The position numbers were made by a program, and so were the translations under genes. A stretch of DNA of 64,000 nucleotides, taken from sequence record MZ574431.2. The stretch is one strand, 5' to 3'. The notes under the pieces are model-generated. The model made no database searches. It had not been told where the DNA came from and saw only the letters and a list, made by a program, of their open reading frames with translations. The stretch's first letter is position 1. Each line of letters opens with the position of its first letter. This document shows, in pieces, positions 2,504-24,340 of the stretch.

Positions 2504-2885
2504 GACGCGGAAAATCGCCCAAAATCGTGGATTTTGGGGTCAAAATGGCCATTTTTAGCGGTTTTTCGGCCGATTTTGGGCCTTCTAGCCCGTTTTTGGG
2601 TTAATTTCGGCGAGTCGCCCGGTTTTGGGTGTGCCCTGAGCGGCGGCGCGCGACCTGTCGTGATCCCAGGTCGCGCGCGGGTCAATGCAGGAGCCAGAGC
2701 AGGAACGCCAGCGTCAGCAGTGACCATCCGTTCAAAAGCTTCAGGCGCTCGCCTCCTTGGTTGCCGTGGCCGCTCGCCACGTTCAGACCCTAGCGCATAA
2801 GAAAAGTGTTGCCAAGCCCAACAATGCAGTTGACAGCATAATTCTGCTATGCGACAAAGGCTCATCGAAACGAGGAGCCGCCCAC

Positions 2886-3026
2886 ATGTGGGAAGTCAAG
2901 ACCTTCAAGACCCGCCTCGCCAAGGAGGCCTGGATCGCCCGCAATGAGGCGCGTTACCAGATCGTCGAGATCGTGGTCGCCAACGCCTACGGCGTCGAAT
3001 TCAAGCCCCTGCGACGCATCGGCTAG
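2886..3026 (+). CDS. hypothetical early protein (46 aa)
   Basis: GAGGAG SD, first gene after promoter 2830. Confidence 0.75.
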   Translation: MWEVKTFKTRLAKEAWIARNEARYQIVEIVVANAYGVEFKPLRRIG

Positions 3027-3045
3027 ACACGAAAGGAAAGCCCCC

Positions 3046-3237
3046 ATGATTCCGCCCGAGGTCCTCAACCCGCGCGACTACTGGACCCCCATCGCCACGC
3101 GTCAGAAAGCCGAGGCCCTCGCCGAACGCTACGCGGTGGACGACTACGAGGCGCCCGGAACCTACACCGTCGAAGAAAAGGGCGCGGCCTTCGCCATCGC
3201 CTATTACGAAGACGGCGAATTCATCGCCTACGTCTAG
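3046..3237 (+). CDS. hypothetical early protein
   Basis: AAGGA SD; followed by terminator. Confidence 0.75.
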   Translation: MIPPEVLNPRDYWTPIATRQKAEALAERYAVDDYEAPGTYTVEEKGAAFAIAYYEDGEFIAYV

Positions 3238-3243
3238 GCCAGA

Positions 3244-3276
3244 CCCGGCGCCCCCTCCCCAGGGCGCCGGGTTTTT
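3244..3276 (+). terminator. intrinsic terminator
   Basis: CCCGGCGCCC/GGGCGCCGGG stem plus T5. Confidence 0.85.
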
Positions 3277-3450
3277 CCTGGCGCCCAGCCGTTAAGGTTA
3301 ACCCGGCGTTAAGGTTAACGCCCCATTAGGGTTAACGCCGCGTTAGGGTTAATCGGCCATTAACCCTCCAGGCGAAAATAGTGCAAGAAAGCGGTTGACT
3401 GCATATCAGGCCTATGCGACAAGAGGGCGTCCCCAACGAGGAGGCCTCTC

Positions 3451-4086
3451 ATGGCTCTGCCGGAACACCTTTTCATCGCCGATCACGGCGACCTCTACGA
3501 TACCAGCGTCGAAGGCTGGAGCGCCAAGGCGCCCCTGCGCCGCGCCTATCGCGTCGCCCTGCCCAAAATCGAGAGCATGGGCCACGTCAAGGCCGCGCTG
3601 CGCTATGGCGACACGACTGACCTGGGCGGCTATCCGCTCTACTTCGTCACGCGCGATGGCGCGGCGCTGTCGTTCGAGAGCGCCCGCAAGATGCTCTATC
3701 AGATCGCGCTCGACTTCCAAGCCGACGCCTCGACCGGCTGGCGCATCGCCGCCGTCCAGATCAACTATGAGGACGGCGACTTGCGTTGCGATCATAGTGG
3801 CGAGCGCATCCCCTGCGCCTACAATGACCCCGAAGTCATGGCCTGGGCGAGCGGCTCCAACGTGTCGGGCTTCATGCCGGACAACGAGCCTTCCCATCAT
3901 GCGACCTGGGAAGAGGCCCGCGACGCGCTCAAGCAAGACATCGAATTCGCGCGCGAGGCCTGCGAGGAGGGGAGCGAGGAGGACGGCCAATTCGCCCACG
4001 TCCTCGACGTCCTGGCCACGCTCCAAGAGGGCGCGGAATTCAACTACGGCGCCAACGGTTACCGTTGGTGGGTCGAAAAGCTCTAG
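3451..4086 (+). CDS. hypothetical early protein
   Basis: GAGG SD after promoter 3395; contains GGYPLYFVTRDG motif. Confidence 0.85.
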   Translation: MALPEHLFIADHGDLYDTSVEGWSAKAPLRRAYRVALPKIESMGHVKAALRYGDTTDLGGYPLYFVTRDGAALSFESARKMLYQIALDFQADASTGWRIAAVQINYEDGDLRCDHSGERIPCAYNDPEVMAWASGSNVSGFMPDNEPSHHATWEEARDALKQDIEFAREACEEGSEEDGQFAHVLDVLATLQEGAEFNYGANGYRWWVEKL

Positions 4087-4100
4087 CGAAAGGAACGCCC

Positions 4101-4247
4101 ATGTTCATCCTGATTGTCGGCAATCCCGTCGATGGCTACGCCTATTATGGTCCCTTCCATGACCATGACGATGCGACCAACTATGCCGAGAACACCGGCA
4201 CGGAAGGAAACCCTTGGTGGGTCGCGCCGCTTGAAGAGGCCGAGTAA
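4101..4247 (+). CDS. hypothetical early protein (48 aa)
   Basis: AAGGA SD, MFILIVGNPVDGY. Confidence 0.75.
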   Translation: MFILIVGNPVDGYAYYGPFHDHDDATNYAENTGTEGNPWWVAPLEEAE

Positions 4248-4284
4248 CCCCGCGATCTAAACCCCCTTTAAGAGGAGACCGCCC

Positions 4285-4587
4285 ATGGGCGCCGACTGTT
4301 TTGTGACCACCGCCAAGGGCAAGAACGCCAAGGAAGCGTTTCGCGACGCCGTGGACGAAGCCCAGTATAAATATGGCCATGGTGGCTATACCGGAACCAT
4401 CGCCGAAAAGCACGAATTCGCCATGGACAAGGGTTTCAAGCCCGACCCCGCGAGCGAAAAGACGGTGATCGAGCAAGCCCAAGACTACGCCTGGACCAAG
4501 GTCGAGGACGAAGACAAATATGGGCCTGCCGTGTGCCTGGACCTGGGCGAAGGTCAATTCCTGTTCTACGGCGTCGCCAAATGCTAG
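4285..4587 (+). CDS. hypothetical early protein
   Basis: GAGGAG SD; YGHGGYTGTIAEK motif. Confidence 0.85.
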   Translation: MGADCFVTTAKGKNAKEAFRDAVDEAQYKYGHGGYTGTIAEKHEFAMDKGFKPDPASEKTVIEQAQDYAWTKVEDEDKYGPAVCLDLGEGQFLFYGVAKC

Positions 4588-4590
4588 GCG

Positions 4591-4617
4591 AGTCCAGGCC
4601 TTCGCGGCCTGGGCTTT
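4591..4617 (+). terminator. probable intrinsic terminator
   Basis: CCAGGCC/GGCCTGG stem then CTTT. Confidence 0.6.
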
Positions 4618-4765
4618 GCCCTCCCGCCGGCGTTAACCTTAACGCGGCATTAGGGTTAACGCCGGCCGCCCAGGCTGTTAACCACCTTGCGAAAATAGTG
4701 CAAGAAAGCTGTTGACTGCATCAAAGCCCCATGCGACAAGAGGTCATCGAAACGGGAGACACCCC

Positions 4766-5317
4766 ATGACCGACAAGACCACCGACCTGCTCTATCCGCA
4801 AACCCTGCTGGCCCAGAACCTGCCGGGTCGCCCCGGCATGCTGCCGGCCTGGATCGTGCTGCGCGACATGGGGCCGAAATCCCATCACCGCTACGTCACC
4901 CATATGCGGCTCGAATATCCGGCCATTGACGAGGCCGGCCCGAAATACGGCTTTGACCATGGCCATTATTTCGCCGACCTGCGCGAGGCGATCGAAGACT
5001 ATAGCCAGCGCTGCGCCGATAAGGTCATGAGCGCCATGCGCCAAGCCTACGACGTACCGCGCGCGCCGGACAAGCCGCGCACCGTGACCCTGCCGCTGGG
5101 CGTGGTCCAGGCCGCCTATGGCCTGATCGACGGCAACACCTTCGACCTCAACGCCGCCACCGAGGACAAGGACTTGGTGAACGCCACCGAGGAGGCGCTT
5201 CGCGAGGCCCTGGGCTCCGATCGCTTTTTCCGCGATGTCGAAGCCGCCTCCAAGGCGCTCGCCGACGCCTACCGCGCCGCCAATCAACCGCCGGCCGAGG
5301 AGACCGCCCATGGCTGA
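4766..5317 (+). CDS. hypothetical early protein
   Basis: GGGAGACACCCC-ATG leader after promoter 4712. Confidence 0.85.
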   Translation: MTDKTTDLLYPQTLLAQNLPGRPGMLPAWIVLRDMGPKSHHRYVTHMRLEYPAIDEAGPKYGFDHGHYFADLREAIEDYSQRCADKVMSAMRQAYDVPRAPDKPRTVTLPLGVVQAAYGLIDGNTFDLNAATEDKDLVNATEEALREALGSDRFFRDVEAASKALADAYRAANQPPAEETAHG

Positions 5318-5825
5318 TTATGAGGCCTATGTGGTCTTGGACAAGCGCCGTCGCCATGTGGCGACGGTGACGTTCAAATTCACCGAAAGCCAAGTGACGG
5401 CCACCGTCGTCACGCCGTGGTCGGCGCCGGAGTCCCTGGCGCGCATCGCCAAGGTCAAGGGCTGGGTGATCGATCAAAACCGGCTCATCGATCCTGCGAC
5501 CGGCAAGGCCGTGGCCTATGTCTCCAAGGTCCAGGAGCAGACCGGCAAGGCCGGCGGCTACGGCTACGACAAGCGCGCCGCCTCGCTCGCCGGCCTCTAT
5601 GTCGATGGCCACGAGATGGGCGACCATTCGTCCAGCCTCGGCGCCCCGAAAAAGCCCAAAGGCGCCGACCTCTACCCGGCCGACTTCACCCCGCCCAAGG
5701 GCTACCGGCTGGCCAACTACCAGAGCGCCACCGAGACCAAGGAAGCCGGCTATATGTCGTGTTTCCGCGAGCAAGGGCTGAACTACCTGACCGCCCTGGG
5801 CTACGACGTTATCCAGGCGCTCTAA
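5310..5825 (+). CDS. hypothetical early protein
   Basis: GAGGAG SD, overlaps previous stop; GKAGGYGYDKRAAS motif. Confidence 0.85.
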   Translation: MADYEAYVVLDKRRRHVATVTFKFTESQVTATVVTPWSAPESLARIAKVKGWVIDQNRLIDPATGKAVAYVSKVQEQTGKAGGYGYDKRAASLAGLYVDGHEMGDHSSSLGAPKKPKGADLYPADFTPPKGYRLANYQSATETKEAGYMSCFREQGLNYLTALGYDVIQAL

Positions 5826-5829
5826 GGCG

Positions 5830-5854
5830 AAGGCCCGCCACACCGGCGGGCTTT
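5830..5854 (+). terminator. intrinsic terminator
   Basis: GCCCGCC/GGCGGGC stem plus TTT. Confidence 0.7.
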
Positions 5855-6040
5855 CTGCTGGCCCTAGGCGTTAACCTTAACCGGGCGTTAGGGTTAACGG
5901 GGCGTAAACAAACATGGTTAACGCGGCCCATGGTCAGCCCAGGCGAAAAGGTGCAAGAAAGCTGTTGACAGCATTTCGACCCCATGCGACAAGGGGGCTC
6001 CAAACAACGCCAACGCCCCAAGCGGGCAGGGAGACACCCC

Positions 6041-6622
6041 ATGGCCCTGGTCACCGAATCCTTCGCCGTCGACATCGACTGCACCCGCGCCCTGACCCCT
6101 GCCGAGCGGCGCGGTCTGGCCGCCGCCATCGCCCATCTGCTGGCCATCAACATCGATAAGGTCGAGCCCGAGCCGGGCGGCTACCTGACCGCCAATATCG
6201 GCCGCGTTCGCCCGGCCGGCATGACCGGCGAGGCCGGCCGCGAGGCGCGGATCAGGACCGAGGCCCTGACCAGCCTCGACCATGACGCCCCGGTCGCCCT
6301 GACCCTGGAGTGTGGCGGCAGCGTCGATGTCATCGCCCGCTTCTACACCATGGCCGACGCCGAAACCTACCTCAACGAAAACCCGGAAATCGACCCGGTG
6401 TCGCTGAACCTGGGCTGCTACGGCATCGACGCCCCCTATGGCGTGGCCAGCGATGCCGACGCTGATAAGCTGCTCTACGACCTGGGCTATCGCCTGCACG
6501 CCACGGCCGGCGGCTCCTGGACCTTCACCGACCCGAAGGGCTATCTCTGGGACGGCGGCGCCAAGCGTGAGGCCGTGGTCATGATCGCCCTGGCGCAAGC
6601 CGCCCAAATCGAGGAGGCGTAA
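6041..6622 (+). CDS. hypothetical early protein
   Basis: GGGAGACACCCC-ATG leader. Confidence 0.85.
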   Translation: MALVTESFAVDIDCTRALTPAERRGLAAAIAHLLAINIDKVEPEPGGYLTANIGRVRPAGMTGEAGREARIRTEALTSLDHDAPVALTLECGGSVDVIARFYTMADAETYLNENPEIDPVSLNLGCYGIDAPYGVASDADADKLLYDLGYRLHATAGGSWTFTDPKGYLWDGGAKREAVVMIALAQAAQIEEA

Positions 6623-6627
6623 ACGCC

Positions 6628-7053
6628 ATGACCCGCTATTCGATCATGGTCGAGGTCCAGACCCTCGCCGACAGCGAAACCCAGGCCCGCAAGGACGTTG
6701 AATTCGCCATCATTGAGGGCCGGTTCCCCGAGCACATGAATTGGATGGTTCGCCAGAGCGCCCCTTGCGCCGGCGAGACCGTCCAGGCCGATGACACCCC
6801 CACCCGCTGGGCGACCTTTGTCGGTCAAGCCTGGGTCCAGGGCCACAGCATGGAGGTGGACGACGCGCGCGTGCGCTACGGGATCACCGACGCCGAATTC
6901 AACGCCAATGGCGGCGATGAGCCCGCCGACTTCGACGCCCTGGCCCAAGCCGCCCGCGCCCCGCAATGGGTCAAGGACTGGTCAGGCCCGTTCGACGTCT
7001 ATATTTCCGACATCGAGGACGGGGAAGACCCCGAGGAAGTGCGCCAGCTATGA
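6628..7053 (+). CDS. hypothetical early protein
   Basis: GGAGG SD, acidic 141 aa. Confidence 0.85.
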   Translation: MTRYSIMVEVQTLADSETQARKDVEFAIIEGRFPEHMNWMVRQSAPCAGETVQADDTPTRWATFVGQAWVQGHSMEVDDARVRYGITDAEFNANGGDEPADFDALAQAARAPQWVKDWSGPFDVYISDIEDGEDPEEVRQL

Positions 7054-7600
7054 AACGCCGCCACAGCCTTTATTTGCTGGTGATCAACACCGGCCCCTGG
7101 TGATCCTCCAGGCGCCGGCCGATTTCCTGCGCTGGGACATCCACCGCGCCGCCATCCTGCGCATGATGCGCCGTGACCATGGCGTCAAGGCCAAGGACGT
7201 TCACGCCATCGAAGGCCTCGCCGGCTCGCCCTACGGCGCCGACGATGACCGCGAGGCCCTGGGCAAGCTCAAGGAAACCTTCGCGGGCCTGCGCCACGGC
7301 TTCGCCGCCTTCCACCTCTACACCTGGGACGGCAAGGACTATCAGCCCTTGCGCGAGCCCCTGACGCGCCCGCAAGGCCTTGTTCGCCTCCTAGGCCCCT
7401 ATCCGCCGCCGAGCGGCGTCTATGGGCCGCACGCGCGCAAGACCGCCTCCCACGTCTATCAGGTCTTCAACGCCGATGGCGTCAAGCTGGTGGGCGGCTC
7501 GTTCGGCCCCGATCCTGACGCGGCCCTGGCCTATGCCCGCGCCCAAGCCGCCGCCAAGGGCTACCCTGACCCGGCGGTCGAGATCGTCACCCCGAATTAA
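7050..7600 (+). pseudogene. hypothetical protein split by an apparent 1-nt deletion in the C-run at 7094-7097
   Basis: ATG 7050 frame stops at 7101-7103; one extra C gives continuous MKRRHSLYLLVINTGPLVILQAPADF...EIVTPN. Confidence 0.6.
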
Positions 7601-7685
7601 ATGCAAGAAAACTGTTGACAGCCTTTCGGGGCCATGCGAGAACAAGGCTCAAGACGAGACAAGAGACAGCCAAGAGGAGGACATC

Positions 7686-7694
7686 ATGAAGTAG
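7686..7694 (+). CDS. Met-Lys-stop minigene
   Basis: AGGAGG-ACATC-ATG AAG TAG directly after promoter 7615; twin at 33972-33980 (-). Confidence 0.55.
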   Translation: MK

Positions 7695-7715
7695 CGACAA
7701 TCTGGAGCACACCTC

Positions 7716-8174
7716 ATGAATGTATTCGTCCGCGACGATCTTTTTCAAACCGATCTCGACGAGTGTGGTGACCCGCTTCTGGGTCGCGTCTTCTACGTCG
7801 TTGTCGAGGATCAGAACGGCGCCCGCATCGCCCACGATCGTTGTTTCTACGATCACCGGCGCGTCACCGATGAGGATGGCTTCGCCTTCTGGCAAGCCCT
7901 CTCTTACGAAGACGTCGCCGCCGAGGAAGCCAAGGCGAAAGCCCTGGCCGCCAAGATCGAGAGCCATCTGGCGCGGGGCGGCGCCCTGGACCCCGAGCAC
8001 TGGCGAGACATCGACCCGTGCTATGGCTCCAAGGCCTATGCCGATCTCGACCGGTTCGGCTACTTCCTGGCCAAGGAACGGGCCGCCGACCGCGATCGAG
8101 GCGAGAACGTCCCTGACAGCCCTTGGGACGGCATCGCCGCCATGGTCGATGGCCCCAACTGGTTCGACCGCTGA
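7716..8174 (+). CDS. hypothetical early protein
   Basis: GGAG SD; 152 aa. Confidence 0.8.
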   Translation: MNVFVRDDLFQTDLDECGDPLLGRVFYVVVEDQNGARIAHDRCFYDHRRVTDEDGFAFWQALSYEDVAAEEAKAKALAAKIESHLARGGALDPEHWRDIDPCYGSKAYADLDRFGYFLAKERAADRDRGENVPDSPWDGIAAMVDGPNWFDR

Positions 8175-8178
8175 TCTT

Positions 8179-8206
8179 AAGGCCTCGCCACCCGGCGGGG
8201 CCTTTT
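8179..8206 (+). terminator. intrinsic terminator
   Basis: GGCCTCGCC/GGCGGGGCC stem plus T4. Confidence 0.7.
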
Positions 8207-8347
8207 GACCACCGCCTGGGCGTTAACCTTAACCGCCCGTTAGGGTTAACCCCGTCGCGCCCGGCGTTAACCCTGTGGCGCAAGAAAGCTGTTGACAGCA
8301 TATCAGCCCCATGCGACAAGAGCCCATCACAACGAAGGAGGTCGCCC

Positions 8348-9025
8348 ATGGGCGCCGGCATTTCAAAGACCGCACTGAACGCCCGCGTTCGGCGCCGCCT
8401 GCAAAACTTCGCCCACGCCAACGGTGGGACCTACGCCAAATATCAGGCCCAAGGCGTCAAGGACGGCCTGCCCTGGACCAAGGGCGTCAACGTACTTCGC
8501 GCCTCCAATGGCGAGACCTTTGGCCTTGACTGCATCGTCATCGGTCAGGGCGAGGCCGCCCGCCCCTACGGCTTTTCCGACCTCGATAGCGCGATCCTGG
8601 CCTATCGCCTGGACGAGGCCGAAACCGGCGCGGCGATCTTCGCGGGCCAGCGCGGCGATTACAAGCGCTTGATCGGCCGGCGTAGCCCGTTCATCCAGAC
8701 CTGGGGCTTTGACTATTGCCTCGCCCTGGAGTTGGACGACGGCGGGTTTACGCTCTTTCGCCCGAACGGGACCATGCTTCCCTTCCGGGGCGAGGCCGCC
8801 GACAGTTGGGCGCGTGAGCTTTGGGTTCTGTTGCCCAAGGTCTACCGCCGCCACGACGAGCGCAAGCCGCTCTATCGCAGCGAGGCGATCGCCCAAGCCC
8901 AGGCCCTGGACCTGTGGGCCAGCCAGTTCGCCGACGAGGATTGGACCACCGCCGGGGATGACTGGCGCGGCAAGCCCGACCACTACAAAGGCCCCCGCAA
9001 CCTGCCCCACGGCGACCCGCTCTAG
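8348..9025 (+). CDS. hypothetical early protein
   Basis: AAGGAGG SD after promoter 8292. Confidence 0.8.
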   Translation: MGAGISKTALNARVRRRLQNFAHANGGTYAKYQAQGVKDGLPWTKGVNVLRASNGETFGLDCIVIGQGEAARPYGFSDLDSAILAYRLDEAETGAAIFAGQRGDYKRLIGRRSPFIQTWGFDYCLALELDDGGFTLFRPNGTMLPFRGEAADSWARELWVLLPKVYRRHDERKPLYRSEAIAQAQALDLWASQFADEDWTTAGDDWRGKPDHYKGPRNLPHGDPL

Positions 9026-9179
9026 CCAGAGGATCACCCAGGCCCCGCGCCTGGGTTCGATCCTTGCCGCGTCCGTTAACCCTAACACGGCGTTAAGGTT
9101 GACAAAAATAAATGCAAGAAAGCTGTTGACAGCATCGAAGCCACATGCGACAAGAGGTCATCGAAACGGGAGACACCCC

Positions 9180-9680
9180 ATGAACGACCAATATCCGCCC
9201 CTGACCGATGGCCAGCAAGCGGCCCTGGTCGCCTTCGCCGACCAGCATGGCGGCCTGGGCGAGGCCTGGAAGGAAGCCCTCGGCGACGCCTGGAGGACGT
9301 GCAGCGAGCCCGAGGCCCTCAAGGCCGACCTGCGAACCATCCGCAACACCTATGGCCCCTCCTGGCTCTATGATGAATATGCCTGGGGCTGGCGCCCGAC
9401 CCTGCCGGAGTGGGAGCGCGCCGGGCGCTGGACCGACACCCCGCCGCAGCCGACGCCGGGCAAGGCCCGCTGGAGCGCGTCGTTCGACCCGCCGGCCATC
9501 GGCGAGCGCGTCCGGGTGACCACCAACGGCCTGGGCTGGGCGAGGGTCACCGGCTACTTCGTCGAAGGCGACTGGCTGGGCGTGATCGTCAAGCTTGAAG
9601 CCCCGGCCGACTGGTATGTCAAGCAGAACGGCGGCAACGTCCCCGGCCACAGCTTCGGAACCGAAATCGCCCTGGATTAA
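9180..9680 (+). CDS. hypothetical early protein
   Basis: Leader identical to that of gene 4766; WKEAL...IRNTYGPSWL motif. Confidence 0.85.
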   Translation: MNDQYPPLTDGQQAALVAFADQHGGLGEAWKEALGDAWRTCSEPEALKADLRTIRNTYGPSWLYDEYAWGWRPTLPEWERAGRWTDTPPQPTPGKARWSASFDPPAIGERVRVTTNGLGWARVTGYFVEGDWLGVIVKLEAPADWYVKQNGGNVPGHSFGTEIALD

Positions 9681-9892
9681 CCATCTGGGACTAGCCTGGG
9701 CGGCCCTGGCTGGGAAACCAGCCGGGGCGCAAGGCCGCCGGCCGGCGTTAAGGTTAACCTCTCTCGCCCGGCAGTTAAGGTTAAACCCGCCGCCCAGGCC
9801 GTTAACCAAGGCGCCCAAGAAAGTGCAAGAAAGCTGTTGACAAGCATCTAGGCCACATGCGACAAGAGGGCATCACAACGGGAGACACCCCC

Positions 9893-10746: not shown

Positions 10747-10757
10747 GACTCCTGCAT

Positions 10758-10788
10758 CGCCCCGGCCTCATCGCCGGGGCGTCTTTTT
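10758..10788 (+). terminator. intrinsic terminator
   Basis: CGCCCCGGC/GCCGGGGCG stem plus T5. Confidence 0.8.
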
Positions 10789-10934
10789 GACCACCGCCTG
10801 GGGTTAACCCTAACGCGACGTTAAGGTTAACCCCGGCGGCCCAGGCCTTAACCATCTTTTCCCGCAAGAAAGCTGTTGACGGCATGGCATGGACATGCGA
10901 TGTCACAGAAACACCGAACGGGAGACACCCCCTC

Positions 10935-11904: not shown

Positions 11905-12293
11905 ATGGCCCTAAACACCGCCGGCCTCGTCGCCCGTCTGCGCGAGGTTCTCGCCGCCGCCCGTCCCTGACCGAATGGGCCAAGGGGCGCGGTCTACAGC
12001 ATCAAAACGTGTCCGCCGTGGCGCGTGGCGACACCGTGCCGCAAACCTCGATCGCCACGGCCCTGGGCTTGCGCCGGGTGACCATCCAAGCCTATCTGGC
12101 GCCCAGTGAAGCCCTGCCCCTGCTTCCGCCGGGCTGGGAAGAGGTGCAGCCCGGATCGGCGACCCCGGTCGGCTGGACCCCTCGCGACAAGGCCGCCCAA
12201 CCCATCCCGCAAAGCGGTTCGGCCGATCGCGCCGCCCGCGCCATCCGCCTGGAGCGGCTGCGAAACGAAAAAGAAATGCGAGAAAGCCGTTGA
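11905..12293 (+). pseudogene. Cro/XRE-like helix-turn-helix protein split by an apparent 1-nt deletion at 11960-11962
   Basis: GGAGG SD; MALNTAGLVARLREVLAAA joins PSLTEWAKGRGLQHQNVSAVARGDTVPQTSIATALGL (HTH pattern) with one extra C. Confidence 0.6.
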
Positions 12294-12343
12294 CAGCATA
12301 ACAAGGCCATGCGACAAAGCCTCATCAACTGAGGAGCGCCGCC

Positions 12344-13207: not shown

Positions 13208-13348
13208 CATCGCCGGCCGGCGTTAACCCTAACGCGGCGTTAAGGTTAACCCTGGGACGCGGGGCGTAAACCAAGGAAAATGCAAGAAAGCTGTTGACAC
13301 GCATCGAAGGACCATGCGACAAAGGCTCACCAACAACGGAGAGCCCCG

Positions 13349-15575: not shown

Positions 15576-15650
15576 GAAAACTGCAAGAAGGCTGTTGACA
15601 GCATCGAGAGCCCATGCGACAAAGGCCCATCGCAACCGGAGACCGCCGCG

Positions 15651-15917: not shown

Positions 15918-16119
15918 CGGGGAGGGCCTGGAGCGATCCGGGCCTTTTTCGCGCCGGCCAGCGTTAACCTTAACGCGCGCTTAAGGTTAACCCCGCCCGG
16001 ACCGTTTTTCGTTTTGGCTGTCGGGCGGGATTTCGTTTTGTCTGTCGAGTGCAAGAAAGCTGTTGACACGCATCGCAGCCCCATGCGACAAAGGCTCATC
16101 ACCAACGGAGGCCTTTTTC

Positions 16120-16871: not shown

Positions 16872-17036
16872 GGCCCTGGCCCGCCCTGACCCGGCGGGCC
16901 TTTCTTTCGCCGATCGCCGTTAACCCTAACCGCCCGTTAGGGTTAACGCCAAAGAAACTACAAGAAAGCTGTTGACACGCATAGCGGCCCTATGCGAGAA
17001 CGTCCCTGCCGCATTGGCGGCCTGGAGACCTATGCC

Positions 17037-17615
17037 ATGACCCGCGATTTCGTTCCGCACGTCATCACCGCCCGCACCATCGACGGCGCCTGCTATTTCA
17101 TCGGCGGCCAGACCTATGGCGATCACCTGGGCCACGCCCGCGTCATGACCAAGGACGACGCCGAACGCCGCGTCGGCGCCCTCCAGCGCCTGGAGCGCGC
17201 CAGCGCCGAGACCCGCCGCGCCAACGACCCCCATGAGGACGACTTTTCGGGCGTCTATGGGCTCGCCGTCGTGGCCACGACCTGGGAAGCCCTGGACAAG
17301 GCCGCCGAGGCGGTCAAGACCTGGGAAGAGGCCGACCTTGCCGCCGAGGAGGCTCACGACGCCCTTTATGACGACTATGACCCGAACGAGGGCATGAGCG
17401 CCGAGGAGATCGCCGCCGAAAGCGCGTGGTGGCGCGAGCAGATGGCCAAGGACCAGCCTTTCGCCCCTGGCCAGTCGGTGACCATCACCGATGAGCTTCA
17501 CCCCGACCACGGCGCCAGCGCCCGCGTCGTCGAAGCCGAGCAATCGGGCTATCTGGTGCTTGCCCTGGGCGAGCGCCTGACCTGGGGCTTGGCCAAGGGC
17601 GTGGCCGCCGCCTAA
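17037..17615 (+). CDS. hypothetical early protein
   Basis: GGAG SD after promoter 16972. Confidence 0.8.
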   Translation: MTRDFVPHVITARTIDGACYFIGGQTYGDHLGHARVMTKDDAERRVGALQRLERASAETRRANDPHEDDFSGVYGLAVVATTWEALDKAAEAVKTWEEADLAAEEAHDALYDDYDPNEGMSAEEIAAESAWWREQMAKDQPFAPGQSVTITDELHPDHGASARVVEAEQSGYLVLALGERLTWGLAKGVAAA

Positions 17616-17617
17616 AG

Positions 17618-17647
17618 AAAAAGGCCCTGGCGAGCGCCGGGGCCTTT
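17618..17647. terminator. bidirectional intrinsic terminator
   Basis: A5-GGCCCTGGC-GAGC-GCCGGGGCC-TTT between convergent genes. Confidence 0.75.
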
Positions 17648-17686
17648 CGATCGTAAGCTGTGATTAACCCTAACGCCGCCTTAAGG

Positions 17687-17923
17687 TTAATCCTTGGCCG
17701 AGCGCCGATGCGGGTTCGAGCGAAGCCATGTGTCGGCTTCGGTGCGGGTCGAGAACGGCGCCCCGCCAATGCCCGTGGTTCCGTCATCCCATTGGATCGT
17801 CCAGCCGACCTGAATGACTTCCCAGTCCTGGGAGACGCCGAACGGGATCGTAGCATGGATAGGGATACGGTTATGGGGCGGGCGCTTGAGTTGGCGCACC
17901 CGCGCCGGGATCACTTGCGGCAT
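17687..17923 (-). CDS. hypothetical protein, the only leftward gene in the early region
   Basis: AGGA SD; own TTGACA-N16-TACTTT promoter; bidirectional terminator downstream. Confidence 0.6.
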   Translation of the reverse strand: MPQVIPARVRQLKRPPHNRIPIHATIPFGVSQDWEVIQVGWTIQWDDGTTGIGGAPFSTRTEADTWLRSNPHRRSAKD

Positions 17924-17965
17924 TGGGATTTCCTGTAGGTCAAGCGGAGGCTTGGGCCATCGAGG

Positions 17966-17993
17966 AAAGTACCACGCCGCCGGCCCATGTCAA
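17966..17993 (-). promoter_or_regulatory. sigma70-type leftward promoter
   Basis: Minus strand TTGACA (17993-17988), 16 nt, TACTTT (17971-17966), with TG extension. Confidence 0.55.
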
Positions 17994-18097
17994 GAACGGC
18001 GCCACGGGTCAAGAATCGCGACTCAAGGCGCAAGAAAACTGTTGACACGCATCGCGCCGCCATGCGACAAAGGCTCAGCACAACAGGGACACCCGCC

Positions 18098-18541
18098 ATG
18101 AACCTCGAAGACTGGTTTTACCCTTCCTCCGACATCTCCAACTCTGACCAGACCATCGACTCCCGCGACGTCATCAAGCGGGTCGATGAACTGCAAGCCG
18201 CTTTCGATGACGCCGAGATCGATCCTGATCAGGTGCTCGCCGACGACGAGCTAGACCTGGGCAAGGACGCCGAGGAAATCCGCGACGCCGCCCAAGAGCT
18301 TAAGGCGCTCAAGGACTTCGCCGAGGAGGGCGAGAACTACGCCGCCGACTGGACGAGCGGCGAAACCCTGATCCGAGAAAGCTATTTCGTCGAGTATGCC
18401 GAGCAGCTTTGCAAGGACATCGGCGACCTGCCCGACAACATCCCCGGCTATCTGGCCATTGACTGGGAAAAGACCGCCAACAACATCAAGGCCGATTACT
18501 CCGAAATCGAGTTTGACGGCGTCACCTATCTGGTCCGCTAA
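18098..18541 (+). CDS. acidic protein with ArdA-like C-terminus (putative DNA mimic)
   Basis: YFVEYAEQLCKDIGDLPDNIPGYLAIDWEKTANNIKADY resembles the ArdA C-terminal pattern; strongly D/E-rich. Confidence 0.5.
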   Translation: MNLEDWFYPSSDISNSDQTIDSRDVIKRVDELQAAFDDAEIDPDQVLADDELDLGKDAEEIRDAAQELKALKDFAEEGENYAADWTSGETLIRESYFVEYAEQLCKDIGDLPDNIPGYLAIDWEKTANNIKADYSEIEFDGVTYLVR

Positions 18542-18855
18542 GGCGAGCGGCCGGCGTCCCCTGGGCGCCGGCCTTTCCCTGGCCACGATCGGTTAACCTT
18601 AACGCCTGGGGCCAGACGGTTAAGGTTAACGCAAGGCCCTGGCGAGGGAACGTCAAGGCCGCGAGCTAGGATTACTCGCGAATGGCTTAGCCGGCGTCCA
18701 GCCGGCGGCGCCTTCGACCACCGCGAGGCGGCCTTGACCCTGACAGTCTCGCCCAAGCGCCGCGCCATGTCAACCGATTTCTTATGTGCAAGAAACCTGT
18801 TGACAGCATGTCCGCCCCATGCGAGAAAGCCTCATCATTCACTGGGAACGACCCC

Positions 18856-19515
18856 ATGCCCCGCACCGTCACCAAACAGGTCTACAAGTTCACCGAACTG
18901 AGCGACAAGGCCAAAGCCAAGGCCGTCGAGTGGTATCGCGAGCTTGAGATGCAAGAAACCGGCTGGTGGGATTACGTCTATGAAGAGGCCGACCGCATCG
19001 CCGACGCCTTCGGGATCACGCTCAATCGCAGCGAAGCCGGCAAGCCCATGTCCGGCCCCGACATCCTGTTCAGCGGCTTCTACAGCCAAGGCGACGGCGC
19101 CTGTTTCCAAGGCCGCTACGCCAGCCCCCAAATCCCGGCCGTGGAGGGCTTCGCCGCCCTCGGGATCGAAGACGACAACCTCAAGGCCCTCGCCGTGCGC
19201 CTGGACGCTCTGAGCGCCAAGACCGGCGGACGCCTGACGACCGTGGTTCGCCACAGCGGTTACTATTATCACGAGTATTGCACCGCCTTCGAAACCGAAC
19301 TGACCGACCCTGAAGACGGTTCGGACTTCGACCCCTACGCCTATGACGTGGAGGATGAAAAGGAACTGGTCGACATCCTGCGCCGGTTCATGAAGTGGAT
19401 TTATCGTCAGCTTGAAGAGGCCGATGAGGCCCGCCTGTCTGACGAGACGATCACCGAAGCCCTCGCCGACTCCGACTACGAGTTTGAGGCCAGCGGGGCG
19501 CCGACCAGAGACTAG
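18856..19515 (+). CDS. conserved-looking phage protein
   Basis: VYKFTELSDKAKAKA and FSGFYSQGDGACF motifs; after promoter 18800. Confidence 0.85.
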   Translation: MPRTVTKQVYKFTELSDKAKAKAVEWYRELEMQETGWWDYVYEEADRIADAFGITLNRSEAGKPMSGPDILFSGFYSQGDGACFQGRYASPQIPAVEGFAALGIEDDNLKALAVRLDALSAKTGGRLTTVVRHSGYYYHEYCTAFETELTDPEDGSDFDPYAYDVEDEKELVDILRRFMKWIYRQLEEADEARLSDETITEALADSDYEFEASGAPTRD

Positions 19516-19705
19516 GCCAAGACGGCGCCCGGCCCTCCCGCCGGGCGCCGATCGTGGTTAACGCCGTGTCGGGTTTTTGTAACCTTAACCCTCTGTTAAG
19601 GTTAATGAAAAAGGCCCTTTCCGTTAACCACGAATAATGCGAGAAAGCTGTTGACACGCATCGCAGCCCCATGCGACAAAGGGCCATCGCAACGGGAGAC
19701 ACCCC

Positions 19706-19993
19706 ATGACGAAACAAGCCCCAAAGCGCCGCAAGCGCTACCCGCCCAAGAGCGACGCGGCCAAGGCCCGCGCCGCCGCCAAGAGCAAGGCGTTTTTCGC
19801 CCGCCACGCCCTCAAGGCCACCGAGGCGGCTATCGCCGCCATGGCGGCGGGCGATCAAAAGGCCGTCCAACGCCACGCCAAGGACGCCCGGCGCCTCAAT
19901 CGCTGGATGTGCCACAAGCGCGACATCGCCGCCGCCTTCAAGGCCGTGTTCGACATCCGCGCCGCCGCTCAAGCCCTGCGAACCGCCGCATGA
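19706..19993 (+). CDS. basic Ala-rich hypothetical protein
   Basis: GGGAGACACCCC-ATG leader. Confidence 0.85.
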   Translation: MTKQAPKRRKRYPPKSDAAKARAAAKSKAFFARHALKATEAAIAAMAAGDQKAVQRHAKDARRLNRWMCHKRDIAAAFKAVFDIRAAAQALRTAA

Positions 19994-20205
19994 TCCGCCG
20001 CCCCGCCCTCATGACCTGCATCGCCGGCGCCGCCCTCATCCTGTCGGGCGTGGCCGTTTCGGCCGCCAGCGCCCCGGAAAAGCGGGTTCTCGTCGGTCAA
20101 TACTGCGACGGCGACCCCGTGCGCCTCTATGGCCTGGAGGACGGCGAGGAAGCCGCCCAAGCCTGCGCCATCGTCGAGGTCCACGCCCTGCCGAAAGGAC
20201 TCTGA
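19990..20205 (+). CDS. small protein with N-terminal signal-like segment
   Basis: ATGA overlap; MIRRPALMTCIAGAALILSGVAVSA. Confidence 0.7.
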   Translation: MIRRPALMTCIAGAALILSGVAVSAASAPEKRVLVGQYCDGDPVRLYGLEDGEEAAQACAIVEVHALPKGL

Positions 20206-20207
20206 CC

Positions 20208-20666
20208 ATGCCCGGACATCCCGCCTTCGATCTTGATGAGCGCGAAGCCGCCGCCGTCATTGCCGGCCTGCGCCTGCTGCAACGCATCGGCGTGCCGGTC
20301 GAGCTAGAAGACGTCGCCACCAACGGCGGCGCCTTCGACGTGCTCGATGACACCGCCATCGACGCGCTCTGCGAGCGCATCAATCTGGACCTGACCACCA
20401 CGCCGCCGCCCGTGCTGATCGAGAGCCGCGAGGAGCCGGTTCGCGTCGAGGACCTCAAGGGCGGCATGATGTGCGACCTTGAGGGCGACATGTTCGCCGA
20501 CAACGCCGGCCGTTACCCCGAATTCGAGTTCGCCTATGCCGTCGTTGTCGAGGTGCAGGTCAACCCGAAGGGCGAGCCGCCTGGAACCGTGATCGTCGAG
20601 TTCGACAAGATCACCGTGGCCTTTCCCATCGGCCACACCCTGCCGACCATCAAGGACCCGCAATAA
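20208..20666 (+). CDS. hypothetical early protein
   Basis: AAGGA SD. Confidence 0.8.
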   Translation: MPGHPAFDLDEREAAAVIAGLRLLQRIGVPVELEDVATNGGAFDVLDDTAIDALCERINLDLTTTPPPVLIESREEPVRVEDLKGGMMCDLEGDMFADNAGRYPEFEFAYAVVVEVQVNPKGEPPGTVIVEFDKITVAFPIGHTLPTIKDPQ

Positions 20667-20747
20667 AACGCAAGAAAGCTGTTGACAGCATAATCAGCCT
20701 ATGCGAGAAAGGATCGTCAAAGGCGATCCCGCCTCGTGGAGACACCC

Positions 20748-21092
20748 ATGAAACTGGTCAAGTCCAACATCATCGACAACCACCGCATGACGGCGCTGCG
20801 CAACTGCATCACCGTCGCCATCGAGCGCTTTCAAGAGCACGTCGATGAGATGAAGCCGGCCGCCGAGCAATACGAGGCCGCCGACGACGCGGGCAAGAAG
20901 GCCCTGGAAGCGGCCACGCCCATGGTTCACCCTCGCGTCTATCGCCAGCTTTCCGACCAGTTCGAGGGCCAGATCGAAGAAGCCCGCAAGCTGCTGGACT
21001 GGCTGGACGGCGACGCCTACCAAGACGCCTCGGGCGAGTTCCCCGAAGGCACCGATTTCGTCGTCGTCGCCGGCCTCGTCCGCGACTACTGA
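20748..21092 (+). CDS. hypothetical early protein
   Basis: GGAGACACCC-ATG leader. Confidence 0.85.
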   Translation: MKLVKSNIIDNHRMTALRNCITVAIERFQEHVDEMKPAAEQYEAADDAGKKALEAATPMVHPRVYRQLSDQFEGQIEEARKLLDWLDGDAYQDASGEFPEGTDFVVVAGLVRDY

Positions 21093-21099
21093 CCAAGCC

Positions 21100-21126
21100 A
21101 AGGCCCGCCTCACCGGCGGGCCTTTT
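21100..21126 (+). terminator. intrinsic terminator
   Basis: AAGGCCCGCC/GGCGGGCCTTTT. Confidence 0.85.
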
Positions 21127-21268
21127 CCTCGCCAGCCCACGTTAACCTTAACGCCGCGTTAGGGTTAACGGCGGGCCGGTTTTCGTTAACCAAAGAAAAT
21201 GCAAGAAACCTGTTGACTGACATCTTGGTTCTATGCGACAAAGGCCCATCACCAACGGGAACGCTCCC

Positions 21269-21667
21269 ATGACCCAAGACCTGACCACCGAAGAACGCAA
21301 CGCCAAGCTCGCCGAAATGGCCGATCACTGGCGCGAGCAACTCAAGGTCGCCCAGGCTCGCCTTGACATGACCGTGCTGGTCGGCAAGGGCTTTATCTGC
21401 GCCCTGGACCGCGATCAATCGATGGCGATCCGCGCCGATGGTCCCGACCGCTATCGCCTGTGGCCGGTGTCGGCGCACCTGACCCACCTCCTCCACTTCA
21501 CCAAGCTTGACGCCATGCGGGTCGCCGCCCATTGGAACGCGCGCCTCCCCGACGACAAGCAAGACCTGCGAGTGAGCGCCATCCACTACCGCGACGCGCT
21601 CAAAACCTTCGTGGAAGTGGCCAAGTCGCAAATCGCCTGGATCGAAGGCGGCTGCAAGGCGGCCTGA
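21269..21667 (+). CDS. hypothetical early protein
   Basis: GGGA SD after promoter 21213. Confidence 0.8.
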   Translation: MTQDLTTEERNAKLAEMADHWREQLKVAQARLDMTVLVGKGFICALDRDQSMAIRADGPDRYRLWPVSAHLTHLLHFTKLDAMRVAAHWNARLPDDKQDLRVSAIHYRDALKTFVEVAKSQIAWIEGGCKAA

Positions 21668-21883
21668 TCTTGACGCCCTCCGGCTCCGGCCGGAGGGTTA
21701 ATTTTTGGCCAGCCTGCATTAACCTTAACGCGCAACCGTTCTCAGGTTAACCTTAACGTGAAAACGGTTGCAGGTTAACCTTAACCCCGCCCGCCCAGGC
21801 CTTAACCAAACCTCGCGAGAAAACTGTTGACTCGCATCGAGGCCCCATGCGACAAGGTGACATCGACAACCGGAGGCCCTTCC

Positions 21884-22540
21884 ATGGCCAGCCCTGAAGA
21901 CATCGCCACCGTCCAAGCCGCCGCCGTCTCTTTCGACCTGGAAGCGTGGGAAGCGGAAAAAGGCGAGTATGCCGAGGCTCATTGGCGTTATCTGAACTAC
22001 GCCTTTGAAATCGAGACCTATTCGCACATGTTCAGCCAAGCCGAACGCGACGCCGCGCGCCGTCTCATCGAAGAATATGAGACCGCCCAGACCGACCATC
22101 AAGGCACCTATGTTGACGAGAGCGCCGCGCTCATCGCCAGCGCCGACGCCTTCACCCGCCAATATATCGCCAGCGCCCTTTGGACCGGCGTCGAGTTGCC
22201 CTATGGCGACGACCGCGCCGACAGCGGCGGCGCCTATGACCTCGAAGAGGATTCGATCATCCCCGCCACGCTGCGCGACATGATCGAAGATTGCGCCACC
22301 TTCCAACGCGACAACGCCGACACCCTGGCCAAGGCCTATGAGTCGGACGTGTATATTCAAGGCGAGCGCTACAACGCCAGCAACGCGGGGCACGATTTTT
22401 GGCTGACCCGCAACGGCCATGGCGCGGGCTTTTGGGATCGCGGCCTAGAAGAGGTCGGCGAGGCCCTGACCAAGGCCTGCAAGGCGTTCGGGGAATACTA
22501 TCTCGCCATGAGCGACAACGGCGAAATCTCCAAGATGTGA
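21884..22540 (+). CDS. hypothetical protein with AGHDFWLTRNGHGAGFWDRG motif
   Basis: GGAGG SD; paralog of 13903..14304. Confidence 0.85.
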   Translation: MASPEDIATVQAAAVSFDLEAWEAEKGEYAEAHWRYLNYAFEIETYSHMFSQAERDAARRLIEEYETAQTDHQGTYVDESAALIASADAFTRQYIASALWTGVELPYGDDRADSGGAYDLEEDSIIPATLRDMIEDCATFQRDNADTLAKAYESDVYIQGERYNASNAGHDFWLTRNGHGAGFWDRGLEEVGEALTKACKAFGEYYLAMSDNGEISKM

Positions 22541-22545
22541 CGATC

Positions 22546-22573
22546 AAGGCCCGCGCTTGACGCGGGCCTTTTT
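22546..22573 (+). terminator. intrinsic terminator
   Basis: AAGGCCCGCG/CGCGGGCCTTTTT. Confidence 0.85.
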
Positions 22574-22700
22574 CTGCCCCGTCCGGGTTAACCTTAACGC
22601 CGGGCGACTTTCCGTTAACCGAAGAAAATGCAAGAAAGCTGTTGACTCGCATCTTCGTTATATGCGAACTTGACGACATCGGAAATCAAGGAACGCCGAC

Positions 22701-23075
22701 ATGGCTAAGACCGAAACCGTCGACCTCGCCCTGGTCATGCTCGATGAGAGCAAGGCCGCCAAGGGCGCCCCGCGCGCCTTCACGTTCGGCGAAGTCCGCG
22801 AGGCCTTCACCGACGCGCACGCCTTGACGTTGCTTCAAGCGCGCTTGCGCCAGATCAACGAAAACGAGTGCAACGGCTATCGCGACGAAACCGCCGAACG
22901 CCTGGACGCGCGCCGCGAGGAGCGCGCTAAGGCCGCCGTCGCCGAGATCGCCAAGCGCTACGGCCTGACCTTCCATTTCAACGGCGATCCGCGCGGGTCG
23001 GCGCTGAAGCTGAAGACGCCTCACACCGGCCGTTATAACGGCTTTGGCGGCCGTGAGGATGGTTGGGCCGTCTAG
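22701..23075 (+). CDS. hypothetical early protein
   Basis: AAGGA SD; ENECNG and NGDPRG motifs. Confidence 0.85.
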   Translation: MAKTETVDLALVMLDESKAAKGAPRAFTFGEVREAFTDAHALTLLQARLRQINENECNGYRDETAERLDARREERAKAAVAEIAKRYGLTFHFNGDPRGSALKLKTPHTGRYNGFGGREDGWAV

Positions 23076-23143
23076 GCCCAACTTGACGCCGCTTCACCCC
23101 CTGTAACGCGTCCCCTTCCACCCCTAGGCCTTGGAGACACACA

Positions 23144-23353
23144 ATGGCCCGCACTGCCGATCACACCACCGCCGACCGTACCCGCGCCCCTCGCGACCTC
23201 GCGCCGTGGGAACTCGACGCCGAACGCCGCCGCGCGCGCAAGGCTTCCAAGTCCTGGCGCGCCGAACGCAAGGGCGTGCGCTCGATGGGCGACTATGCCC
23301 AGGGCGACGACATGCGCACCCTCGCCGATGGGGCCGATTTCTACCCGAACTAG
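23144..23353 (+). CDS. hypothetical early protein
   Basis: GGAGACACACA-ATG. Confidence 0.75.
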   Translation: MARTADHTTADRTRAPRDLAPWELDAERRRARKASKSWRAERKGVRSMGDYAQGDDMRTLADGADFYPN

Positions 23354-23455
23354 GGCGCGCCCTGGCCAGCGAAAAAAAGTGCCGTCAACGCAAGAAAGGC
23401 GTTGACGGCATAATCGCCATATGCGACAAAGGCTCATCGGCAACGGAGACACGCC

Positions 23456-23650
23456 ATGACCTTCCACCACAACCTGATGAGCAAGCTGGACGCGGCCCAA
23501 ATGGCGGGCGAAATGACCTACGCCCAACACGCCGACATGCGCGCCACGCTGCGGGCCTCCAACATGCGCGGTCAAGTCTTCACCTCGATGGATGAACTGC
23601 GCAAGGCCTGCAAGGGCGCCGGTCGCGACTTCCAAGGCCGGTTCGCCTAA
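23456..23650 (+). CDS. hypothetical protein, duplicate of 24341..24535
   Basis: 53 of 64 aa identical to the paralog. Confidence 0.9.
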   Translation: MTFHHNLMSKLDAAQMAGEMTYAQHADMRATLRASNMRGQVFTSMDELRKACKGAGRDFQGRFA

Positions 23651-23666
23651 GACCCCCTCCCCTGAG

Positions 23667-23692
23667 AGGCCCGCCCTAGAGGCGGGCTTTTT
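23667..23692 (+). terminator. intrinsic terminator
   Basis: GCCCGCC/GGCGGGC plus T5. Confidence 0.85.
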
Positions 23693-23880
23693 CTTGGCCG
23701 TTAGCCTACCGTTAAGGTTAACCCCCAGGCCCTCTGGGGTTAACCCTAACGCCGCGTTAAGGTTAACCCCGGCGGCCCAGGCCTTAACCATGACAAGGAA
23801 AAAAGATCGCTTTCCTGCGAGAAAGCTGTTGACCGCATAAAGGCGATATGCGACAAAGGGTCATCAACGGAGCAAGTCCA

Positions 23881-24051
23881 ATGTCCTTCCGCCTCGCCCT
23901 TACCGAAGACGCCCGCTTCACCGCCGCCCGTGGCGCGGTCCGCACCGTCCGCGAGCAAGCCCGCCCGGCGCCGCACAAGGACATTGACGGCAAGGCCCTG
24001 CTGGCGCCCGCCTCGGCGCTGGACCGCATCCGCGCCGTTCTCGGGAACTGA
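23881..24051 (+). CDS. hypothetical early protein
   Basis: GGAG SD after promoter 23829. Confidence 0.75.
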   Translation: MSFRLALTEDARFTAARGAVRTVREQARPAPHKDIDGKALLAPASALDRIRAVLGN

Positions 24052-24054
24052 GTC

Positions 24055-24246
24055 ATGAAGGTCATCGCGCACTATGCCAACGGCCTGCAACGGGTCATCC
24101 CCTGCGAGACCTCGCAAGAGGCTGTGGCCGCGATCAAGGCGGCTCTGACCTATGATCGCGCCGCCAAGTTCACGCTTGACAAGCGCCTTGCCTCGGCGAT
24201 CCCGACCCGCGCCGCCTCCGAACGGGTTTGGCTGTTGAGCGCGTGA
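24055..24246 (+). CDS. hypothetical early protein
   Basis: Follows previous stop by 3 nt. Confidence 0.75.
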   Translation: MKVIAHYANGLQRVIPCETSQEAVAAIKAALTYDRAAKFTLDKRLASAIPTRAASERVWLLSA

Positions 24247-24340
24247 GGGCGATCGAAAAAAGATCGCCTCACCGCAAAAAACCTGTTGACTCGCATAAGG
24301 CCCCTATGCGATAAAAGGTCATCGGCAACGGAGACACGCC

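Follow-up and report, generated by a model that had tools for sequence, protein, structure and literature searches.

The left direct terminal repeat (DTR) of Caulobacter phage J4 contains a series of promoters in which an inverted repeat, GCAT-N9-ATGC or a near match to it, lies between the -35 and -10 elements, and the question is what this dyad does there. The stretch analyzed, called the window here, comprised 64,000 nucleotides of record MZ574431.2, and its bases 2000-24500 were 100% identical to phage J4 (MZ574431.2, Bertelyvirus, 312 kb) at identical coordinates. The 24.7-kb DTR contained 24 promoter cassettes, and 47 small hypothetical genes were annotated in it (1-24723), nearly all on the + strand. 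Judging from the sequences compared, GCAT-N9-ATGC is a cis-element under selection and the hallmark of the DTR promoters (presumed to be early) of the Bertelyviruses. We tentatively favor its being the predicted operator of a phage-encoded dimeric regulator, with a Cro-like protein encoded in the same array as the first candidate.

The dyad in the DTR promoters

A search of the window revealed 24 exact copies of GCAT-N9-ATGC, compared with 1.0 expected from shuffled sequences (maximum of 3 in 100 shuffles). Twenty-two of these lay within 2836-24309, all on the + strand and each in a different DTR promoter; the other two, at 53799 and 53911, were not of the DTR promoter class. An earlier note on this DNA (the original prediction) had counted exact dyads in 22 of the 24 DTR promoters and one mismatch in those with the -35 box at 7615 and 21213. 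All of these counts were correct, both mismatches being in the left arm (GCCT and ACAT), and the six-base arms TCGCAT/ATGCGA that it had described for the promoters with the -35 box at 21827, 22642, and 24286 were seen there. From 5' to 3', each cassette consisted of an A-rich stretch, tGCAAGAAAGCtg, TTGAC(N), 0 or 1 base, GCAT, N9, and ATGC, followed by GA(C/G)AAA, GG.TCATC, a GGAG-type ribosome site, and ATG. The spacer was 17 bp in 14 promoters and 18 bp in 10; the extra base was always located between TTGAC(N) and GCAT, and the length of N9 was constant. When the J4 promoters were anchored on GCAT, the left-arm columns were identical in 23-24 of the 24 promoters and ATGCGA in all 24, and positions 4-10 of N9 carried 0.3-0.6 bit.

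Phages C1, C2, RB23, BL47, and two further isolates were at least 99% identical to J4, whereas CcrSC and CcrBL9 aligned with only part of the region, at about 80% identity. All promoters of the DTR class carried the exact dyad in CcrSC (23/23) and in CcrBL9 (23/23). Over the 70 promoters of J4, CcrSC, and CcrBL9, the four left-arm positions were kept in 69, 70, 69, and 70 promoters and each of the four right-arm positions in all 70, with less than 0.6 bit at positions 4-10 of N9. Twenty orthologous promoter pairs of J4 and CcrSC, matched via their downstream genes, differed at 2 of 80 left-arm positions (2.5%), 0 of 80 right-arm positions, 93 of 180 N9 positions (52%), 24 of 120 positions of the -10 hexamer, and 4 of 120 positions of the -35 hexamer. 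Selection on the left arm as strong as that on the -35 box is supported by these alignments. Among the dyad sites of J4, C1, RB23, and BL47, 10 substitutions fell in N9, 1 at a junction base, and 0 in the arms, and every promoter of C1 and RB23 still fitted the pattern. The GCCT variant of promoter 5 and the ACAT variant of promoter 19 were common to C1, RB23, and BL47; the CcrSC orthologue of promoter 5 had GCAT, and ACAT also occurred in the metagenomic contig L260. N9 itself was a hot spot of micro-diversity, with about 10 substitutions in 216 positions among phages that were 99.4-99.9% identical overall.

The pattern was also found in two metagenomic contigs. L259, whose helix-turn-helix (HTH) protein was 61-62% identical to that of CcrSC, had one promoter with the exact dyad. 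L260, with an HTH protein of 44% identity, had 19 promoters of the DTR class, 15 of them with the exact dyad; the others read ACAT...ATGC (two), GCAT...ATGT (one), and ACAT...ATGT (one), and two additional TTGACA promoters had no dyad. From this variant set, L260 tolerates changes only at the outermost mirror positions (R-CAT...ATG-Y), once at both in one promoter, a double variant of which about 0.08 would be expected by chance according to our estimate from small numbers. We conclude that the dyad exists, is under strong selection, is peculiar to the DTR promoters, and has been retained in four Bertelyvirus-like lineages.

Genome-wide, J4 had the dyad with a following GA in the two DTR copies only; the bare dyad matched three times in the unique part (263 kb), as many as chance would give. 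The TTGACA promoters of J4 outside the DTR had no dyad and different spacers, those at 34105 and 53936 carrying TTAACCAT in the spacer. CcrRogue and CcrColossus, which belong to sister genera, had no dyad in their DTRs; the cassettes there opened with CtrA-type boxes (TTAAC-N6-GTTAAGA). A pattern scan of all prokaryote genome contigs returned single chance matches only, and the multi-match contigs in a scan of IMG/VR were CcrSC and CcrBL9 only.

Other promoter types were seen in the window. The TTGACA promoters at 50996, 51032, and 57496 (+ strand) and 57528 (- strand) were preceded by GTGACGCAAT(T/C)C, had no dyad, and formed a separate class; those at 57496 and 57528 were a face-to-face pair. 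The region 53780-53960 held three direct repeats, each about 27 bp long and with an inverted pair, TTTATG...CATAAA, inside it; after them came ATGCCC-TTTC-GGGCAT, an inverted repeat without mismatches, and then a TTGACA promoter with the TTAACCAT spacer, the promoter type found at 34105.

Spacer classes and the fixed N9

The spacer class differed in 6 of the 20 J4-CcrSC orthologous pairs, and one further switch was found between CcrBL9 and CcrSC. In the 18-bp spacers, the left arm moved together with the -10 side, away from the -35 box. The same N9 strings recurred in promoters that are not orthologous. The base that follows GCAT correlated with the spacer class, being A in 23 of 32 promoters with 17-bp spacers versus 4 of 38 with 18-bp spacers. 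The two classes are therefore old alleles exchanged between cassettes by recombination, so that the constancy of N9 represents fewer than ten independent events. The original prediction had regarded the fixed N9, in spite of the change from 17 to 18 bp, as the mark of a dimeric protein site. The constant length itself was borne out in about 90 promoters, even though N8 or N10 would be compatible with promoter function, as was the register with the -10 side; the ten 18-bp promoters of J4 should not be counted as ten independent cases.

Shared N9 strings and tandem cassette duplications in BL47 could also mean that the arms are conserved only through recent cassette duplication or homogenization by gene conversion. 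Such an origin is extremely improbable, because orthologues differ at 52% of their N9 positions versus about 1% in the arms, and the arms were kept in four lineages down to 44% protein identity. The BL47 duplications concerned the last two cassettes, with 34 promoters per repeat.

Contribution of the host RNA polymerase

For numbering, GA(C/G)AAA was taken as the -10 hexamer, which places the right arm at -16 to -13 and the left arm at -29 to -26. The TTGAC of the match to TTGACA was invariant (24/24 in J4 and 70/70 over the three phages), and the spacers of 17 and 18 bp fell within the 17 ± 1 bp of sigma-70/sigma-73 promoters. The right arm was preceded by T or C at -17, for T-A-T-G-C at -17 to -13, and TRTGn is the extended -10 of E. 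coli promoters. The Caulobacter -10 consensus is GCtANAWC, and the GC of the right arm matched its start (PMC8144410; PMC13004042). The A at -11, -9, and -8 fitted this host consensus, whereas -12 was G in 69 of the 70 promoters instead of T (PMC8144410; PMC13004042) and -7 was mostly A (A/G) instead of T/C. With G at -12, the right half-site extends to ATGCG, and C preceded GCAT in 36 of the 38 promoters with 18-bp spacers, giving five-base arms. The DTR promoters were not called by an E. coli-type promoter scan. Among the mapped Caulobacter RpoD sites (PMC4287350, dataset S4), 204 of the 25-mers contained TTGACN and 1 of them continued with GCAT; GCAT in the RpoD 25-mers numbered 111 in about 1,667, which is the expectation from composition. 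A search of 151 Caulobacterales genomes for TTGAC-N1-2-GCAT-N9-ATGC gave 18 matches, about the chance level. We know of no base-specific polymerase contact at -29 to -26.

These findings bear on the possibility that GCAT is a spacer element that boosts intrinsic promoter strength for the host RNA polymerase, with no regulator and with a coincidental mirror relation. Conservation covered the full 90-bp cassette, that is, the upstream GCAAGAAAGC block, the -35 box, the extended -10, the discriminator, and the start region, a pattern suggestive of selection for great promoter strength; the right arm is TRTGn, a conserved 4-mer would mirror ATGC at some spacing with a prior chance that we estimate at a few percent, and a conserved block after the -35 box in contig L262 (see below) has no partner. 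However, this explanation is rather unlikely, because host promoters showed no preference for GCAT, no polymerase contact that would read the left arm is known to us, and that arm is in register with the -10 side instead of with sigma region 4 at -35; in addition, G at -12 deviates from the host consensus, and the outer-position variation in L260 is mirror-symmetric. The original view of the dyad as a protein site and not promoter geometry was partly supported, a protein site being the better fit for the left arm, which is selected, specific to the DTR, and absent from host sigma-73 promoters and from the other TTGACA promoters of J4; the right arm is explained by the extended -10.

Three other readings of the core promoter were rejected. 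A sigma-32 reading of TTGAC...CCCCAT had a spacing about 3 bp shorter than the geometry of that class, a MerR-type spacer operator needs a spacer of 19-20 bp while the DTR spacers are 17/18 bp, and a CtrA-box promoter has TTAA-N7-TTAAC on the -35 box while the core has TTGACA and no TTAA, with TTAAC repeats upstream only. When the upstream GCAAGAAAGC block was compared with the -10 block, the best register scored 0.49 and the other registers 0.34 or less. GCAAGAAAGC was rejected as an operator repeat and treated as A-rich similarity, only AGAAAG being shared in L260.

Pairing of the arms in a DNA or RNA hairpin, as in an N4-type hairpin promoter or a processing signal, was also considered, and the minimum-energy fold did pair the arms at 19 of the 24 sites. 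This is highly improbable as the function of the dyad, because the stems had 4-7 pairs (mostly 4 or 5) with loops of 5-9 nt, the mean energy was -4.3 kcal/mol (RNA parameters) versus -2.3 for shuffles, and the dyad lies upstream of the predicted start; N4 hairpins are different, with a stem of 5-7 bp and a 3-nt loop.

The predicted operator

The arms form two inverted half-sites at a fixed distance, and conservation of the left arm goes beyond the needs of the polymerase, as in an operator. The predicted site would be centered near -21 and extend from the 3' edge of the -35 box to the extended -10. Because it spans both, a bound dimer would exclude the host RNA polymerase-sigma73 and close all cassettes together. 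The right arm would have two readers, the polymerase (TRTGn and the GC of the -10) and the regulator, and the left arm would be read by the regulator only. Since the best candidate gene sits within one of the cassettes, a Cro-like negative feedback is proposed.

Several points weigh against an operator. The right arm is fully accounted for by the extended -10 (TRTGn and the GC of the host -10) and needs no regulator, so the symmetry argument rests on one block of four bases, the left arm. The arms are only 4 bp long, and the inner positions are asymmetric, with GCCC(T/C) on the right only. The half-site centers are 13 bp apart, and Cro-type sites have 10-11 bp (about one helical turn); HipB operators have the same 13-bp center-to-center spacing. 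Contig L262, from an unrelated phage, has a conserved CCCGAC just after the -35 box without a mirror partner, which means that conserved blocks at this place need not be dyads. No stand-alone operator was found outside the promoters, and the records of J4 and BL47 combine a frameshifted candidate gene with intact dyads.

Alternatively, a transcription factor of the Caulobacter host might bind the dyad and so let the phage gate transcription of the DTR by the state of the host. Such a factor would already be in the cell at DNA entry, CtrA-type boxes occupy the equivalent cassette position in CcrRogue and CcrColossus, and predicted CtrA sites were concentrated in these DTRs (PMC9437464); in J4, the spacers at 34105 and 53936 carry TTAACCAT, and TTAAC repeats lie upstream of the dyad promoters. 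However, the composite motif was at chance level in the 151 Caulobacterales genomes, and a literature search for the motif found no published description. GCAT-N8/N9/N10-ATGCGA in 13 Caulobacterales genomes gave 34, 25, and 33 matches, with no excess of N9, which is a weak test for a small regulon. We know of no Caulobacter factor with a GCAT-N9-ATGC motif, and a host factor is unlikely.

The sign of the regulation could be the opposite, with the DTR promoters switched on via the dyad and a dimer at -21 needed for the open complex, which we consider quite unlikely. The -10 element, with G at -12 and no T at -7, would then be deliberately poor, and the dimer would be either a factor of the host or a protein brought in along with the phage DNA. 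If this were true, the whole 24-kb repeat that enters first would form one regulon dependent on that factor, in place of the CtrA dependence of the sister genera.

The candidate Cro/XRE-type regulator

The first candidate for a regulator acting at the predicted operator is the HTH gene at 11905, inside the promoter array. In J4, this gene had an ATG start and a stop after 21 codons, and the -1 frame ran on to 12293. A C run near 11960 (11955-11965) read CCC in the J4 and BL47 records versus CCCC in C1 and RB23, and the shortening arose by recent mutation or by an error in sequencing. The intact gene had 131 codons in C1 and RB23 and 144 in CcrSC and CcrBL9. The GCCT and ACAT variants of J4 are not a decay that followed the loss of the gene, because they are also present in C1 and RB23, where it is intact.

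The Pfam scans found no DNA-binding domain among the annotated J4 DTR proteins or, directly, in the HTH proteins of CcrSC and CcrBL9, and a PDB sequence search gave no match. The family was confined to these phages and a few metagenomic contigs, and searches of metagenomes and IMG/VR with the HTH alignment revealed no new relatives. Distant members matched Pfam YdaS_toxin (34 bits, above the cut-off), HTH_31, and HTH_3, some with a tandem domain. A structure model built from a 12-sequence alignment had four helices and a predicted local distance difference test score (pLDDT) of 92-97 across residues 1-60; the reading was based on this model, and the single-sequence model (pLDDT 50) was not used. 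The best fold matches in the PDB were all Cro/XRE proteins, namely DdrO, 434 Cro (probability 0.94, TM 0.56), HipB, P22 c2, SinR, C.AhdI, and the 434 repressor, with E-values all above 0.1. Protein-atlas features were consistent with an HTH of this type. That gene 11905-12293 encodes a Cro/XRE-type HTH domain is reasonably supported, and a protein of this fold is encoded inside the array in all four lineages. The original prediction had proposed a binding assay with the repaired HTH protein from 11905; its HTH was borne out as a Cro-type fold, in the model and in the Pfam matches of distant members, and the protein is only a candidate regulator.

The promoter of the HTH-gene cassette was the odd one of the set in both J4 and L260. 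Promoter 9 of J4 had three CATG in or beside N9 and a -10 of GATGTC, and the L260 counterpart (8995-9025) read ACAT...ATGT, with both outer arm positions changed. These deviations would fit a possible autoregulation. The distant HTH homologues (contigs L261, L262, L265, and L266) adjoined different promoters.

Comparison with known systems

The operators of the lambdoid phages (lambda OR, 434 OR, and P22) for Cro and cI are likewise two-fold sites overlapping the -35 and -10 of early promoters, and small Cro/XRE-type HTH dimers shut off early transcription there; the candidate fold matched 434 Cro, P22 c2, and the 434 repressor. In contrast, J4 has 24 promoters with one putative operator each and no tripartite switch, its 4-bp arms flank N9 at a half-site distance of 13 bp, and it is a jumbo phage of virulent type in which no lysogeny module was seen. 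In the conserved inverted repeats of phiC31, the C1 operators of P1, and the stoperators of L5, one regulator site is repeated many times across the genome at or near promoters, which puts many transcription units under coordinated control, and the multi-copy site of J4 would resemble them in this. However, those sites belong to the immunity repressors of temperate phages, and those of L5 and P1 are asymmetric, whereas those of J4 are limited to the terminal repeat, where each is merged with an extended -10. HipB operators (TATCC-N8-GGATA), which are bound by an XRE-type HTH dimer, resemble the J4 site in being a dyad with a 13-bp center-to-center distance, and HipB was among the best fold matches; they differ in arm sequence, in their toxin-antitoxin context, and in that four operators lie in one promoter.

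The CtrA-box promoters of the phiCbK-like phages (PMC9437464) also drive DTR cassettes of small genes in Dolichocephalovirinae and also have a bipartite motif inside the core promoter. Their motif differs in being a direct repeat, TTAA-N7-TTAAC, that is read by host CtrA and takes the place of the -35 box, whereas Bertelyvirus has a perfect TTGACA and the inverted GCAT/ATGC. The J4 promoters share with the Caulobacter sigma-73 consensus TTGaCgS / GCtANAWC (PMC8144410; PMC13004042) the -35 box TTGACA, the spacer of 17/18 bp, and A at -11, -9, and -8, and differ from it in G at -12, A/G at -7, and the GCAT at -29 to -26, which has no host counterpart.

If a single protein reads the dyad, about 24 transcription units with about 45 orphan genes, in the first DNA that enters the cell, would be under one switch. 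For a jumbo phage that infects a model bacterium, this would be a simple means of timing, silencing, or dissecting the early takeover. It would also be an example of an operator half-site merged with an extended -10, and the contrast with the CtrA boxes at this position in sister genera would be a clear instance of rewired regulation. The candidate gene occurs in natural alleles, frameshifted in J4 and BL47 versus intact in C1 and RB23, which are a ready-made contrast for the operator.

Organization of the terminal repeat

The positions of the DTR, its promoters, and the candidate gene are listed in Table 1.

Table 1. Features of the J4 terminal repeat discussed in the text
Feature	Position	Strand	Spacer (bp)	Dyad	Remark
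Left DTR of J4	1-24723	+			GenBank annotation of MZ574431.2; contains every dyad promoter
Candidate regulator gene, Cro/XRE-type HTH	11905-12293	+			frameshifted in J4; inside promoter array
Promoter 1	2830-2858	+	17	2836-2852, exact	
Promoter 2	3395-3423	+	17	3401-3417, exact	
Promoter 3	4712-4740	+	17	4718-4734, exact	
Promoter 4	5965-5993	+	17	5971-5987, exact	
Promoter 5	7615-7643	+	17	7621-7637, one mismatch	left arm GCCT
Promoter 6	8292-8320	+	17	8298-8314, exact	
Promoter 7	9126-9154	+	17	9132-9148, exact	
Promoter 8	9837-9866	+	18	9844-9860, exact	
Promoter 9	10876-10904	+	17	10882-10898, exact	drives HTH-gene cassette
Promoter 10	12290-12318	+	17	12296-12312, exact	
Promoter 11	13294-13323	+	18	13301-13317, exact	
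Promoter 12	15595-15623	+	17	15601-15617, exact	
Promoter 13	16063-16092	+	18	16070-16086, exact	
Promoter 14	16972-17001	+	18	16979-16995, exact	
Promoter 15	18042-18071	+	18	18049-18065, exact	
Promoter 16	18800-18828	+	17	18806-18822, exact	
Promoter 17	19651-19680	+	18	19658-19674, exact	
Promoter 18	20682-20710	+	17	20688-20704, exact	
Promoter 19	21213-21242	+	18	21220-21236, one mismatch	left arm ACAT
Promoter 20	21827-21856	+	18	21834-21850, exact	six-base arms
Promoter 21	22642-22671	+	18	22649-22665, exact	six-base arms
Promoter 22	23402-23430	+	17	23408-23424, exact	
Promoter 23	23829-23857	+	17	23835-23851, exact	
Promoter 24	24286-24315	+	18	24293-24309, exact	six-base arms

The intergenic regions of the DTR (3237-24286) had a fixed order of stop codon, terminator-like hairpin (rich in GC and with a short run of T), 12-bp units, and promoter. 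The 12-bp unit was GTTAACCTTAAC or its reverse complement, and 1-4 copies were located at each cassette boundary before the promoter. The density of TTAAC was 2.8/kb in the DTR versus 0.1/kb elsewhere in the window. Predicted CtrA sites have been found concentrated in the DTRs of phiCbK-like phages (PMC9437464), and the TTAAC repeats of the J4 DTR are probably the predicted sites of that study, but their TTAA spacing is 6 bp and the canonical one is N7.

A weak Pfam match to the anti-restriction protein ArdA was found at 17987-18541 (E 9.5e-5, under the curated cut-off), and it would fit an early, host-takeover role for the DTR genes. The DTR promoters are presumed to be early because of their position in the DTR, this weak ArdA-like match, and the analogy with T5 that has been drawn for these Caulobacter phages (PMC3556154). 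The first DTR gene (63-503) had a weak proteasome/HslV-like match (E 6e-4, under the cut-off), and the start of the CcrSC repeat contained an annotated terminase fragment and an HslV-family peptidase.

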